Below, piece by piece: positions 49,443 to 59,995 of a stretch of 64,000 nt of DNA. The stretch covers positions 1-64,000 of the forward strand of contig NIVC01000946.1 of NCBI GenBank assembly GCA_002269645.1, given 5' to 3'. The DNA is from Macrostomum lignano. Its lineage: Eukaryota. The notes under the pieces are model-generated. The model was not told the origin of the DNA, ran no database searches, and was given only the letters and a program-made list of their open reading frames with translations. Within the stretch, counting starts at the first letter, position 1; every line of letters starts with the position of its first letter. The translations under genes and the position numbers were made by a program.

Positions 49443-50642
49443 CTGAGGGTTTATGTTAAAGGAGGAATCATTACATTATTATTCTTTTTTGTGGCTGTGC
49501 ATCTAAAATTACCTGTTTAGCATTCTAGCTATATCCAAGATGGTTAATAGCCAGCAAAGACAATAGGAAGCAAGTTTTTATTAATAGCAAATTCAATTGG
49601 TAAAAATCACTAACCTGACCCTATTTGAGAGGGTCTAATTAATATTGAACACCTAAGAAGTAAACATTGATATAAGTGGCAACTAAAGCAACAGCCAAAA
49701 TAGTAAAAAAATTATAGTATTGAGGCAATATGCCTTGAATTTTAATAGATGGAATGGCAGCAAGGATTTTGTGCTGCTCTGTGCGTAAATTAATATTTAT
49801 ACAAACAGTGCAAGATTGTGGGGTCTAGGGAGGTACAAAAAGGTGGCATGATATGATAGGCCCTTTGCCAACCCCCTGGCTTAGCAAGCCAGCTAGCTTG
49901 GCGCACCCACCCCACCTCAGCTAGACAGAGGTTGGGAGGTTTCAGATGTGGCTACACTAGTGCTTGTTAGTTGCATATAGTCTGGCTGCCATAGTATGAT
50001 AGACAAAGATACAAACAACTCATTTTTATATAGAATAAGCTACTTTTATTGCTATTATACTAAAGTGCTAACAGTGATTTAATATGCTTTATTTCAGTTT
50101 TCATCTTTTCATCTGCTAATATTTGTGATAAATCATTTTATATCTACTAATTTGGTCTAATGGTCAGGCCAAAAAGCTATATATTAAGTTGTAGCACTTA
50201 ACTTCAAAAGCTTAGGTCCTAGTATGACCCTTTTCAATGATTTTTAGGCTTATTCATCTTAAATTTTTAATAAATTGGTGAAAGAAACTACATATTCACT
50301 ACTATGTGCAAGGATACAAAGTGATAGCCTTAATAGGATATTTTTACTTTGCTAGAATATTAATTAGTAGGAAATTATTTATTTTTATTTATTTCCCCTT
50401 GTAATATGTATTTATAGTCCTAGATGTCAATTTTCAGTAGCATTTTTATCTTATTAGCATAGATCATAGATAATATTATATACTTTAGTTTTACTTTTTG
50501 TAAAAAGCAATAATTAAACCTAGCGTACTACATGGCAATACAAAGATTATATAATAAAACCAATAGGGCTAGAGCTAACAAACATAGTAAAATAGACCTA
50601 GATATGGACAATTTCTACCATCGAAGTCCTTTCAACCTAGCA

Positions 50643-50816
50643 AATCACCTGGTCATTTCTATTGGCAACATTGTCATTGTCAGTTCAAATATTTGTTAAA
50701 TTGATATAAGTTGCTATTGGACAAAATTGGACAAAATTGTAGTCATGTGACTGCCCTTAGCCAATAGCAACTTTTTGATAAACATGTGTATTGCTAATAG
50801 AAATGGCTAGGTGATT
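50643..50816. mobile_element. Decayed MITE with 26-bp terminal inverted repeats
   Basis: AATCACCTGGTCATTTCTATTGGCAA versus the reverse complement of 50791-50816, AATCACCTAGCCATTTCTATTAGCAA. Confidence 0.7.
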
Positions 50817-52119
50817 CCCAAAGTTGTGCATGTATAATTTCTACATTGGTGGATAATTAGCTCAATGGATAAAAGTATAAGTGAATAACTAATTAATTTA
50901 GTGAATGAGCTATGATTCAAATAAAGAAAAAATCTACTAAATTAATAAATTAGGAGTAGAAGATATACTTTGTTGTCTTTTATTATAAACCTTAGGTTAG
51001 GCCCTATCTAAATTATTTTAAATAAATAAAGAATATAAATTTATATATCAGTATAACTACTATAAGGACTAGCAAAAAATCAAAGACTGAAAAGAAATAG
51101 GCCTAAACAAAAATATTCTTATCATATTATAAATCTTATTTTATTTGCCTAAATAAACATAGGCCTATATGAGCCAAATTGTTAACTTTTGAAAATCAGT
51201 CTAGCAATAAAAAGTTAGACCTACAAACTTTTTGTAGCTTAATTTTTTTATATTGCCAAAATGCATTTTGCCTATTAGGCACTATGGTCATTTTTGCTTT
51301 AAAACTTGTTTTAAAGTTTTTTATAGCTATAGGCATAGCATAACTTTGACTTGAAGTTTCTTAACTAATTTCTATGTTTAATATATAAATTTCAGCTTTA
51401 GGATAGCTATTAATAAGAATAAATTTAACAAAACAAAAAATAGCCAAGACTGGCATTCTTTTATTTGATAATACACAAATTTAAAAGCAAAAATGAGGGA
51501 GAATAGTATATTAAATTTTGGATATACTCACACAAGAATCTTATAATTATAGCTTATTAGAGAATGATCTTTATATTTACTTTTAATGCAATTACAATGC
51601 CCTCAATAGAGAATTTGTTAAGAATGCATCTTAAAATGAAAGTGAGGGGGTAGAAATGAAAATAAAACACTATTTTTATTAATATTGTTATACCCATTTC
51701 TTTTTAGCTTTTGTTTCTTTGTTATCCCCTTTCACTTTTGTTTTACAATGCATTTTTAAAAATTCTCCATTTATTTGCTTTTTATGAATTCAGTTTTTCT
51801 TTTCTCTGAAATCTGAAATTGCACAAAGCAACTGCAGATTGTTAAGAATAATAATTCTAATAGTATTTAGACTTTTGAAGTAGAAGTAAAGGTACTAATA
51901 GTAATAAGACAGATATAAATATATTAAAAATAAATTTGTTCTCATTTGAAATTGCATTTGATTGAATCTAGAATAGCATCACTGATTGACTTTTAGCATT
52001 TATGACTGAATTGCACTGAAAAGCAAAATGAGGCACTGAGAAGCAAACTAGGCCCTAGGGTTAGGCCCTACCAAAATTCCAGGCACTAAAAAGCATAAGC
52101 ACCAAAAGGTGTGAATACC

Positions 52120-52480
52120 CCTTGACATCTTAGCAATACCCTGCAAGCCTTGACGTCTCAGCAATTCCCCCATAACGGCCATAAGCCTTGACATATTGAT
52201 ATTAGCGATTCCCCCAAGCTTTGAGATCTCAGCAATTCCCCCCAAGCCTTGCCATCTCAGCAATTTCCCCCTAGCCTTGGCCTCTTATAAACGCCCCCCT
52301 GTAACACTTGATATCTCAGCAATTTCCCCCATGCCTGACATCGAAGCAATTTCCTCCAAGACCAAGCCTTGATGATGATAACCCATCTTGATCTTAGCAA
52401 TTTTCCCCAAGACCCCAAGGCTTGACATCTCAGCAATTCCACCCAACCAAGCATTGACATCTTAGCAATTCCCGCCTAAG
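52120..52480. repeat. Degenerate ~28-bp tandem repeat (TTGACATCTCAGCAATTCCCCCAAGCC)
   Basis: Visible units. Confidence 0.85.
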
Positions 52481-58200: not shown

Positions 58201-58918
58201 TCTGCTATACAACAAGTTATGTAGGCTATGTAATGGAATTAGCTCTCCTTTGGTATTAGCTTTTAGAAATATGGGTGGCTAGTTTCTAAAGACATAAATA
58301 ACTTTCATTGTATATTGTCCTATGCATGATTTAGCATGTTTTCTGTATATAAATATGAATCTTTTCCATGAGATACACTATAATTTAATGTAATTTTGCA
58401 TTTTGGCAAACTTTTAACATATTTCAAAAGCTTTTATGTATAAAATCATGATTTTAATATTTAGATCTATATAATAGAAAATAATGTCATTATTTTCCCA
58501 GATTGCAAATGTATGCATGCATAGCATTGATTGCAATAGAATAGTTTCAGAGTTATAAACAATATGGCAAAGAGATAAGAGAAAAAGAAGAAAAGAGTGA
58601 CAAATGATCAATATACAAATTAAATAATCTCCTCATACAGTCTCTAAGCTTCTTAAGATCTATTGGCCACCTTAGCTGAAATAGACAATAATAATTAAAA
58701 AACAATATATGAAGATAATTTTTGACACCTTTAAGCTCATATATTCCACTTTTTAATTGTACCAAACTTGTTGATTTTCAAGCATGCAGTAAAGCTATAT
58801 GAGCAAAGGTATCACACCTTTCAGACACCCCTTGTAAACCTAGATGAGCCATTGTGACATATTTTCTTGGTGAAACAGTTTCTCTACTTTTAGTTCAGGT
58901 ATCAGTAGTGATTAAGAA

Positions 58919-59227
58919 TGCACATACATGTGCAACAGTCGGCCAAGTCGGCCGATCCGGCCGACCGATTTGGCGGCCAACCAAGGAAGTCGCAAAAATG
59001 CCCACCCGAAAAAACACCAAGTAGTAGTACTAAGTAGCTGACGAGACATCTTGGCTTTTAAAGACAGTCATAGTTACTCCTGCCGTTTACCCAAAGTTGC
59101 GTTAATTTTGCTTTCGGGTTTTTTTACATGTAAGTCGCATTTTTGGCCAAAAACTACGTCGCATTTTTGTTAAAACTAAGTCGCACGGCCGACCGAATTT
59201 TGGAGGTTGCGCATGTATGAGAATGCA
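58919..59227. mobile_element. MITE copy B (CpG largely retained)
   Basis: TGCACATACATGTGCAAC...GTTGCGCATGTATGAGAATGCA; shares CCTGCC.TTTACCCAAA..TGC.TTAATTTTGCTTT with copy A. Confidence 0.75.
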
Positions 59228-59995
59228 TAAGCTATTTTATAAAAAAGTTGTTGCAGTGACTTGCAGATGTGATGGCTTCTTGCTATTGGTATACATTAGG
59301 CCTAGCCTAACACCACTGAAATGTACATGGCAGGCAGCTTTAGGCTGGAACACTAGGCGTGGAAGGCAATAAAATTATTGGGGACTGGGGAAGGGAATAG
59401 GGGTTTGGTGTGGAAAGATATGATGGAGGGGTTCAGCTGGGGGCAACTTAGAATACATTGAAATGCTTCCGTTTAACTTACTACTGAACTGGCAGTAGCT
59501 TACACACAAATGTGCTGAGTGGCCCAACCACTTATAGTATTGTGGTAATGCTAAAACATGAGATTAATATACAAAACAAAAATTATCAGATCATATTAGC
59601 AGTCCAACATCTTATTCTTTCCTCTATGCTTTACACTTGATACTCTCTGGTTGCCCAAAATTAGTCATGGACTCTTCATGGACACATGCACACCTAGGTG
59701 AATTGTAAAATGTATTTTAAACCCCAAAAGGATCATTCCATAAGCTGATTTTATCCTTTCTTGTAGTTATGCTTTTTGCTACTTTTTGATAATTGATAAA
59801 TTTTTGCCACTTATAGTACAAAAATAAGAATTGTGCTTTATGCCTCTGCATGAAATAGAGGCATAAGTGCTTCCTATATTTTAATACGGAAATTGATAAA
59901 CCTTTACCAAAATAATTGCTGACTTTATGCTATATTATCCAACTATTTTTGGTGATATTAAATTAAAAAGCATATCATTATTCAAAGCAAAGATA

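Follow-up and report, generated by a model that had tools for sequence, protein, structure and literature searches.

A CpG-depleted, AT-rich spacer between MDN1 and YTHDC1 of Macrostomum lignano probably reflects decay of methylated transposon relics rather than RIP-like hypermutation

The window analysed here is a stretch of 64,000 nucleotides from the flatworm Macrostomum lignano (contig NIVC01000946.1, positions 1 to 64,000). It contains MDN1, on the minus strand at about 13.2-49.5 kb, and an orthologue of YTHDC1 on the plus strand, and these genes are separated by an AT-rich spacer of about 10.5 kb, considered below as the zone 49450-59950 (Table 1). A first-pass annotation, made from the letters only, had described this zone as a sharply bounded region of CpG erasure with an excess of TpA, and had proposed a hypermutation resembling the repeat-induced point mutation (RIP) of fungi, with decay of CpG in methylated DNA as the null explanation. 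The erased zone and its sharp edges are confirmed. We found that CpG decay explains most of the signal (odds ratio (OR) of 8.4 at CpG), so that the zone has for the most part an ordinary mechanism and RIP in an animal is not supported.

Table 1. Features of the window. o/e, observed/expected ratio; MITE, miniature inverted-repeat transposable element.
Feature	Position	Strand	Remarks
Polinton packaging ATPase	3418-3903	+	
Polinton adenovirus-type protease	5323-5856	-	
Polinton protein-primed DNA polymerase B, in pieces	5930-7504, 7704-8414, 8584-9617	-	
Polinton integrase	10379-11416	-	
MDN1 (midasin), first recognisable exon	48831..49475	-	AAA1 with Walker A motif; Pfam AAA_5, E=3.4e-18
CpG-depleted, AT-rich spacer separating the divergent MDN1 and YTHDC1 genes	49476..59995	.	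GC 0.327, CpG o/e 0.27, GpC o/e 1.68
AT core 1	50623..52153	.	longest CpG-free gap of the window (1,532 bp); no tandem array
Scattered (TAGGCC)n microsatellite seeds	50990..59304	.	source of TAGGCCTA; clusters at 50998-51167, 52049-52075, 53003-53438, 56124-56192 and 59297
Decayed 28-bp minisatellite	52113..52488	.	TRF, 68% matches; repeat families D1 and D2
Inverted-repeat-flanked element	53660..54795	.	arms 53668-53793 and 54688-54785; 16-bp repeats; inverted repeats I1-I3; self-BLAST
Old MITE copy A	54986..55237	+	aligned to copy B; 8-bp target-site duplication AGCATGCA on both sides
AT core 2	55350..58939	.	three CpGs only in 3.6 kb; gaps of 1,484, 1,157 and 861 bp
Short-palindrome-rich repeat (TGGCATAA/TTATGCCA)	57386..57696	.	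direct repeats D4 and D5
Young MITE copy B, 297 bp	58923..59219	+	14-bp terminal inverted repeat CATACATGYGCAAC
Target-site duplication of MITE copy B	58915-58922 and 59220-59227		8-bp AGAATGCA
YTHDC1 exon 1	59996..60421	+	Pfam YTH; about 70% identical to human YTHDC1
YTHDC1 exon 2	62565..63800	+	splice junction from reading frame and alignment with human YTHDC1

The limits of the zone are sharp and both coincide with coding exons. CpG density is normal as far as 49410, inside the MDN1 exon whose end at 49475 forms the left limit, and the right limit is the ATG of YTHDC1 at 59996. Between them GC falls to 0.327 and CpG to an o/e of 0.27, while CpA/TpG reaches 1.18, TpA 0.94 and GpC about 1.66-1.68. 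As a neutral control we used 5.6 kb of MDN1 sequence that is neither exonic nor tandemly repeated (the unique-intron proxy), in which the o/e values are 0.92 for CpG and 1.04 for CpA/TpG. The zone thus combines the CpG deficit and the TpG/CpA excess that are expected from the decay of 5-methylcytosine (5mC). The MDN1 exons, at 58% GC, have a CpG o/e of 0.99. The annotation's statement that the flanks keep their CpGs holds for exons and unique intron sequence but only in part for the intronic minisatellite arrays, whose mean CpG o/e is 0.37, several of them being CpG-free owing to the sequence of their unit.

Depletion is deepest in the AT-rich cores, where the CpG o/e drops to 0.04-0.06 (50000-52000 and 55381-58000); in AT core 1, GC is 0.24-0.28 and the o/e values are 0.0-0.1 for CpG and 1.6-2.3 for GpC. 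The counts previously made by eye proved exact, with no CpG in 55381-56820 and two in 50041-50640. Four of the six longest CpG-free gaps of the window fall in the zone, none of the four being tandemly repeated. Open stretches in the zone do not exceed 99 codons, and its open reading frames are junk; Rfam and tRNA scans of the window gave no match, in the zone or outside it, and in a second contig, NIVC01002605.1, the 10 kb matching the zone carry no annotated gene model. A mitochondrial or viral insertion as the source of the AT-rich DNA was considered and was checked only through these absent open reading frames and RNA genes.

This second public contig (assembly GCA_002269645.1; hereafter L001) carries the same locus and allowed a comparison of two haplotypes. 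Divergence between L001 and the window over 49741-64000 ranges from 0 to 5% per 500 bp in a haplotype-like mosaic; identity within the zone is 98-100%, and in AT core 2 the two haplotypes are identical over 57001-58914. The 9,822 aligned bases of the zone contain 124 substitutions (84 transitions and 40 transversions). C/T differences affect 16 of the 100 CpG cytosines (0.160), 29 of 1292 at CpA (0.022), 27 of 1141 at CpT (0.024) and 12 of 639 at CpC (0.019). CpG cytosines therefore differ far more often than all others (16/100 versus 68/3072; OR 8.4, confidence interval 4.7-15.1, p=3e-9), an approximately 7-fold hypermutability which agrees with the faster CpG transitions expected of 5mC decay. 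Since the CpGs that survive in the zone are 7-fold more polymorphic, the erosion is ongoing and not merely inherited.

We then compared this effect with the neighbouring gene bodies. In the YTHDC1 gene body, with its minisatellite excluded, cytosines in CpG did not differ significantly from those followed by another base (OR 1.9), and the difference from the zone was itself significant (p=0.017). Transitions in the MDN1 intronic minisatellites affect 5.4% of CpG and 3.6% of other G/C positions, and a mild CpG excess is seen at the level of consensus sites (15/30 versus 52/221). These controls indicate that the strong CpG hypermutability belongs to the spacer and not to the adjacent gene bodies, which bears out the earlier suggestion of a domain-specific process acting on intergenic relic DNA.

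The C/T differences are distributed unequally between the haplotypes. Over 49741-59950, the C of a non-CpG difference stands in L001 43 times and in the window 24 times; at CpG it stands in the window 11 times and in L001 5 times. Within the otherwise CpG-free spacer, a 50-bp island at 52560-52610 holds 8 CpGs (gacgcgtaatgc...ccgcgacgcgcgtgc), and 2 of the 500 positions of the block around it differ between haplotypes; this island may be a regulatory element free of methylation, or a site where transcription starts. Past the end of the window, L001 has another CpG-poor stretch in the intergenic DNA downstream of YTHDC1 (14001-16000; 8 CpGs in 2 kb, o/e 0-0.17), flanked by CpG-normal genes.

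The repeats inside the zone provide an age series. MITE copy B has a CpG o/e of 1.31 and is polymorphic: L001 has a clean empty site, showing that the insertion is recent. In the old copy A the CpG o/e is 0.33, and from B to A, C>T changes affect 36% of CpG cytosines and 10% of the others (p=0.002). The targets of the two copies are very alike (AGCATGCA and AGAATGCA) and, together with the insertion polymorphism, this suggests a hAT-like family with a target preference and recent activity. A wider test on repeat pairs of the zone (the two MITE copies, the arms of the inverted-repeat element and one further pair) gave C/T differences at 68% of CpG, 38% of CpT and 21% of CpC cytosines, and at 25% of CpA cytosines once four ancestral CpGs decayed on opposite strands had been removed (CpA versus CpT/CpC, 17/68 versus 20/71). 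Among the substitutions reported earlier between repeats, CG>TG/CA was seen in a repeat pair, whereas CG>TA was not.

The inverted-repeat-flanked element, probably a non-autonomous DNA transposon, still has CpGs and is the part of the zone that decays fastest. Of its 29 CpG cytosines 11 differ between haplotypes, and different C/G positions have been lost in each of them; it accumulated 24 transitions and 2 transversions, compared with 60:38 in the rest of the zone. The short-palindrome-rich repeat, with two direct copies 226 bp apart and a DNA fold z-score of -2.3, is probably another MITE or small inverted-repeat transposon. No repeat of the zone has a copy in the MDN1 introns or elsewhere in the window, so that intergenic and intronic copies cannot be compared within it.

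A second, weaker context was observed, unexpectedly, among the non-CpG cytosines. Haplotype differences affect 5.6% of cytosines in CAG and 5.1% in CTG, the other contexts ranging from 1.3% to 3.3%. When pooled, CAG/CTG cytosines differ more often than other non-CpG cytosines (19/354 versus 48/2642; OR 3.07, p=1.6e-4), and each half of the zone shows the effect (OR 3.0 and 3.9). It is absent from the YTHDC1 region (OR 0.69; difference from the zone p=0.0013) and from the intronic arrays (OR 0.74). None of the 20 CCG cytosines differs, and the bases flanking the CAG/CTG events show no Dcm-like CCWGG pattern; the MITE pair, with 6 CAG/CTG sites only, is uninformative. Relative to a first-order Markov expectation, CAG/CTG is depleted in the zone (observed/expected 0.80) compared with the unique intron (1.20), the exons (1.37) and the Polinton (1.12), and TAG/CTA is enriched (1.23, versus 0.98, 1.03 and 0.93, respectively). 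Hypermutability and depletion of CAG/CTG, with enrichment of TAG/CTA and CAA/TTG, are thus confined to the silent domain, as expected of a CHG/CWG footprint (H, not G; W, A or T). These data are suggestive of a real second context, and its hypermutability may reflect non-CG methylation. Because CAA, CAT and CAC are unaffected, non-CG methylation, either CHG-like or of the DNMT3-type mCAG, fits better than RIP. The non-CG component proposed in the annotation is thereby retained in a narrower form, limited to CAG/CTG and not extending to CpA in general.

Taken together, we give a probability of roughly 0.7 to the reading that the zone is an intergenic MDN1/YTHDC1 spacer which lost its CpGs through germline methylation of non-genic transposon-relic DNA followed by deamination. 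The spacer would be a patchwork in which a dead minisatellite and microsatellite seeds lie among old, decayed DNA-transposon relics (the MITEs and the inverted-repeat element). DNMT1/DNMT3 would methylate its cytosines in the germline over the long term, and the methylated cytosines would deaminate spontaneously, turning CpG into TpG or CpA; the flanking gene bodies would be unmethylated and would hence retain their CpGs. Decay would follow age, from the recent MITE with its full CpG content, through the old copy that lost most of it, to the oldest AT cores with almost none, and the weaker CAG/CTG effect in the same domain would possibly add non-CG methylation. According to reviews, M. lignano has kept both DNMT1 and DNMT3, its 5mC is low, and genomic methylation patterns in free-living flatworms are not known (PMC11292947, PMC9246332, PMC10658182).

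Several points weigh against this reading. Methylation as the cause of the observed composition, domain limits, context-specific C/T excess and age series is something that we infer from the mutation pattern and from statements in the literature. Adult M. lignano is described as low in 5mC. A CpG o/e of about 0.05 requires erosion that was very strong or lasted very long, and is hard to square with this level unless the methylation is concentrated in regions of this kind or in the germline. The fall in GC from about 0.45 to 0.26-0.33 exceeds what CpG loss can produce by itself, and calls for a further AT-biased process or for founder DNA that was already AT-rich. This reading does not account for the strong excess of GpC (o/e 1.66). 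The substitutions between the window and L001 are unpolarised, and the controls from gene bodies are either limited in size or subject to selection. The CAG/CTG result is post hoc and comprises 19 unpolarised events at one locus. Finally, the MDN1 exon next to the zone, which matches residues 296-474 of yeast Rea1 in a PDB search, apparently starts at a splice acceptor near 49440, and the segment of approximately 150-290 residues found ahead of AAA1 in other midasins was not detected upstream of it (49476-64000). Searches of the zone for these N-terminal exons by tblastn with 32 homologues, by a hidden Markov model of 10 N-terminal regions and by a scan for the W[DN]W motif found none. As these exons were not located, part of the zone could be a 5′ intron.

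The GpC excess is present in both haplotypes (o/e 1.66-1.71 in 49476-59950 and in L001 1-9955, up to 2.5 per kb). It concerns all NGCN tetramers, save those containing CpG, and persists after normalisation in local windows as small as 50 bp. Protection of GpC was tried as its cause and rejected: GpC cytosines are no less polymorphic than other cytosines, which shows that the excess does not result from slower decay. Per-T rates, under an assumption of equilibrium, hint at more T>C changes at GpT.

An explanation free of methylation was also considered. The zone would then owe its composition to its founders, AT-rich and CpG-poor transposons and simple repeats, and to a mutation bias that depends on context and is general in DNA that is silent or replicates late. 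The low 5mC reported in adults, a GC content too low for CpG decay alone, and the minisatellites that are CpG-free purely through their unit sequence all agree with this explanation, and the unexplained GpC excess indicates that other context effects operate. We nevertheless consider it improbable. A MITE that arrives CpG-rich (1.31) and whose older copy is CpG-poor (0.33) speaks against a founder composition, and the remaining CpGs of the zone, 7-fold more polymorphic than its other cytosines, point to an erosion that still goes on and was not merely inherited. Genomes that lack methylation are not known to approach a CpG o/e of about 0.05, which lies far below theirs. In addition, the reviews credit the species with both DNMT1 and DNMT3.

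RIP in the strict sense is a premeiotic system which recognises duplicated DNA and converts C to T preferentially at CpA, thereby producing AT-rich, TpA-rich islands. The zone superficially resembles the AT isochores left by RIP in fungi such as Neurospora and Leptosphaeria, being an AT-rich, sharply bounded relic island, devoid of genes and open reading frames, beside GC-rich genes. The published thresholds of RIPper are a product index above 1.15, a substrate index of at most 0.75 and a composite index above 0, and RIP-affected regions typically give 1.6, 0.2-0.3 and 1.3, respectively (PMC7882544). In the zone, the product index TpA/ApT is 0.96, the substrate index (CpA+TpG)/(ApC+GpT) is 1.48 and the composite index is -0.52. 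None of 20 sliding 1-kb windows passed any threshold, the extremes being 1.14 for the product (maximum) and 1.14 for the substrate (minimum), with a composite never above 0. The TpA excess that had been noticed is real locally, since the counts given for 53281-53520 are exact (39 TpA, 29 ApT and 1 CpG), but it does not extend to the region: TpA/ApT is 0.96 over the zone (1124 versus 1172) and 1.08 in the unique-intron proxy, where the TpA o/e is 0.89, so that the zone itself shows no surplus of TpA.

The mutation data lead to the same result. CpA/TpG is in excess and not depleted, and CpA cytosines are no more polymorphic than those of CpT and CpC (OR 1.03, p=1.0), the outcome that the annotation itself had named as refuting its RIP-like hypothesis in favour of ordinary CpG decay. 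RIP produces transitions almost exclusively, whereas the transition to transversion ratio is only 2.1 in the zone (84:40) and 1.2 in the MITE pair (31:26). It is high only in the inverted-repeat element, where the 24:2 ratio would by itself favour RIP, but this excess arises mostly from 11 CpG changes. Moreover, the young MITE copy is a duplicate lying in the zone and is unmutated. The zone does not belong to the RIP family, as none of the four defining features tested was found, and every test for RIP-like hypermutation that could be run (indices, CpA rate and transition bias) failed. Together with the fact that the host is an animal, these results make RIP very unlikely here.

The recurrent motif TAGGCCTA had also been taken as a sign of mutation, by comparison with CAGGCCTG. 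Ten exact copies of TAGGCCTA occur in the zone, where about one is expected, and none elsewhere in the window, and 0 of 100 shuffles reached ten; CAGGCCTG has no copy in the zone and two elsewhere. The flanks of the TAGGCCTA copies are mutually unrelated. At these sites the haplotypes differ by indels of TAGGCC (6 bp) at 53215, TAGGCCC (7 bp) at 52062 and TAGG (4 bp) at 53034. Such unit-length indels indicate that the motif stems from a (TAGGCC)n microsatellite and rule out its origin as a doubly mutated CAGGCCTG. A literature search for TAGGCCTA returned primers only.

Editing of transposon DNA by an AID/APOBEC-like cytidine deaminase, which would deplete TpC and ApC and spare GpC, could be read from the composition of the zone (o/e of 0.75-0.78 for TpC/GpA, about 0.8 for ApC/GpT and 1.66 for GpC), and TpC looked more variable in the small sample of repeat pairs (12/18). 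The latter signal is, however, skewed because the sequence is rich in T and its T>C changes are unpolarised, and the haplotypes show C/T rates that are flat with respect to the 5′ neighbour (GpC 0.022, CpC 0.026, ApC 0.022 and TpC 0.021; OR 0.95, p=1.0). The dominant contexts, CpG and CWG, are moreover set by the 3′ side, unlike the APOBEC pattern, and the chance that a deaminase shaped the zone is very small. A sequencing or assembly artefact, in which base-calling errors at modified bases (known at methylated motifs on some long-read platforms) would erase CpGs or fake C/T differences, is scarcely credible, because L001 has the same depletion and composition (CpG o/e 0.19 over 9,955 bases), which shows that the zone is no assembly artefact, and because the differences between the contigs form a haplotype mosaic and include biological variants such as the presence or absence of a MITE with its target-site duplication and unit-length microsatellite indels.

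The remaining features of the window concern the genes and the far end of MDN1. Exon 1 of YTHDC1 is 100% identical to the M. lignano protein BOX15_Mlig005373g1, and the composite YTH domain obtained after splicing is 99% identical to the M. lignano entry A0A1I8HCN2 of UniRef. Searches with the MDN1 exon and with the Polinton polymerase gave no close match, and it was the YTH domain that identified the species. The intron between the two exons (60422-62564) is filled by a 49-bp minisatellite. Nearly all MDN1 introns (13700-48720), like this YTHDC1 intron (60931-62229), are dominated by a minisatellite of their own, with units of 16-83 bp in up to 45 copies; the genome of M. lignano is reportedly very rich in simple repeats. 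Directly downstream of MDN1, at 1-12 kb, lies a Polinton/Maverick virus-like transposon, whose polymerase has its nearest relatives at 42-48% identity, cnidarian and crinoid sequences among them. At this single locus the transposon relics of the zone decay at CpG, and the Polinton has a CpG o/e of 0.6.

The zone can be compared with several known systems. Its CpG deficit with TpG/CpA excess, its approximately 7-fold CpG transitions, the decay of its repeat family with age and the DNMT1 and DNMT3 reported for the species are all as in vertebrate bulk DNA or the methylated genes of invertebrates. The vertebrate genome average of CpG o/e is about 0.2; the cores of the zone are deeper (about 0.05), and the GpC excess and the CAG/CTG effect are further differences. 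Unlike in the usual invertebrate mosaic, it is the intergenic DNA that is depleted and the gene bodies that are spared.

Non-CG methylation offers a second comparison. In plants, CHG methylation depends on CMT3 and prefers CAG/CTG over CCG, and mammals have DNMT3-dependent mCAG/mCAC. The hypermutable context of the zone is likewise the symmetric CAG/CTG, excludes CCG (0/20) and is confined to a silent domain. It differs from plant CHG methylation in that the effect is modest (3-fold, 19 events) and known here from its mutation footprint; animals are not known to have chromomethylases.

The closest animal parallel may be the chaetognath Paraspadella gotoi, in which methylation is found on transposons only and not on gene bodies, a pattern also cited for ctenophores and early-diverging nematodes (PMC12460157). 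By the mutation proxies used here, transposon-derived DNA of the zone would likewise bear the footprint of a methylation history, and the body of the adjacent housekeeping gene would bear none. Our data differ from that methylome in being mutation footprints at one locus, and in that the whole spacer is depleted, not just the recognisable transposons. The phyla named for transposon-only methylation do not include flatworms; platyhelminths are among the lineages with trans-splicing, which has been linked with gene bodies losing their methylation (PMC12460157).

The value of the finding lies in the assignment of the DNA to M. lignano, in the prediction of intergenic methylation and in the CAG/CTG footprint. 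We advance only tentatively, as a possibility that is rather doubtful at present, the general proposition that methylation in M. lignano, in CG as well as in symmetric CAG/CTG, targets the transposon relics of intergenic DNA and not gene bodies, and that deamination in both contexts builds AT-rich CpG-free islands from these relics. The locus itself predicts that methylation in this worm falls on such DNA and skips gene bodies, as shown in chaetognaths and reported in ctenophores and early-branching nematodes, lineages that all trans-splice. If this were true genome-wide, flatworms would be a further animal lineage with transposon-only methylation and would bring an independent example of the proposed tie between trans-splicing and gene bodies that lose their methylation. 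Were the CAG/CTG footprint confirmed, it would be a sign of non-CG methylation in the germline of an invertebrate, and M. lignano would be an animal with a plant-like, CHG-type germline mutational footprint.

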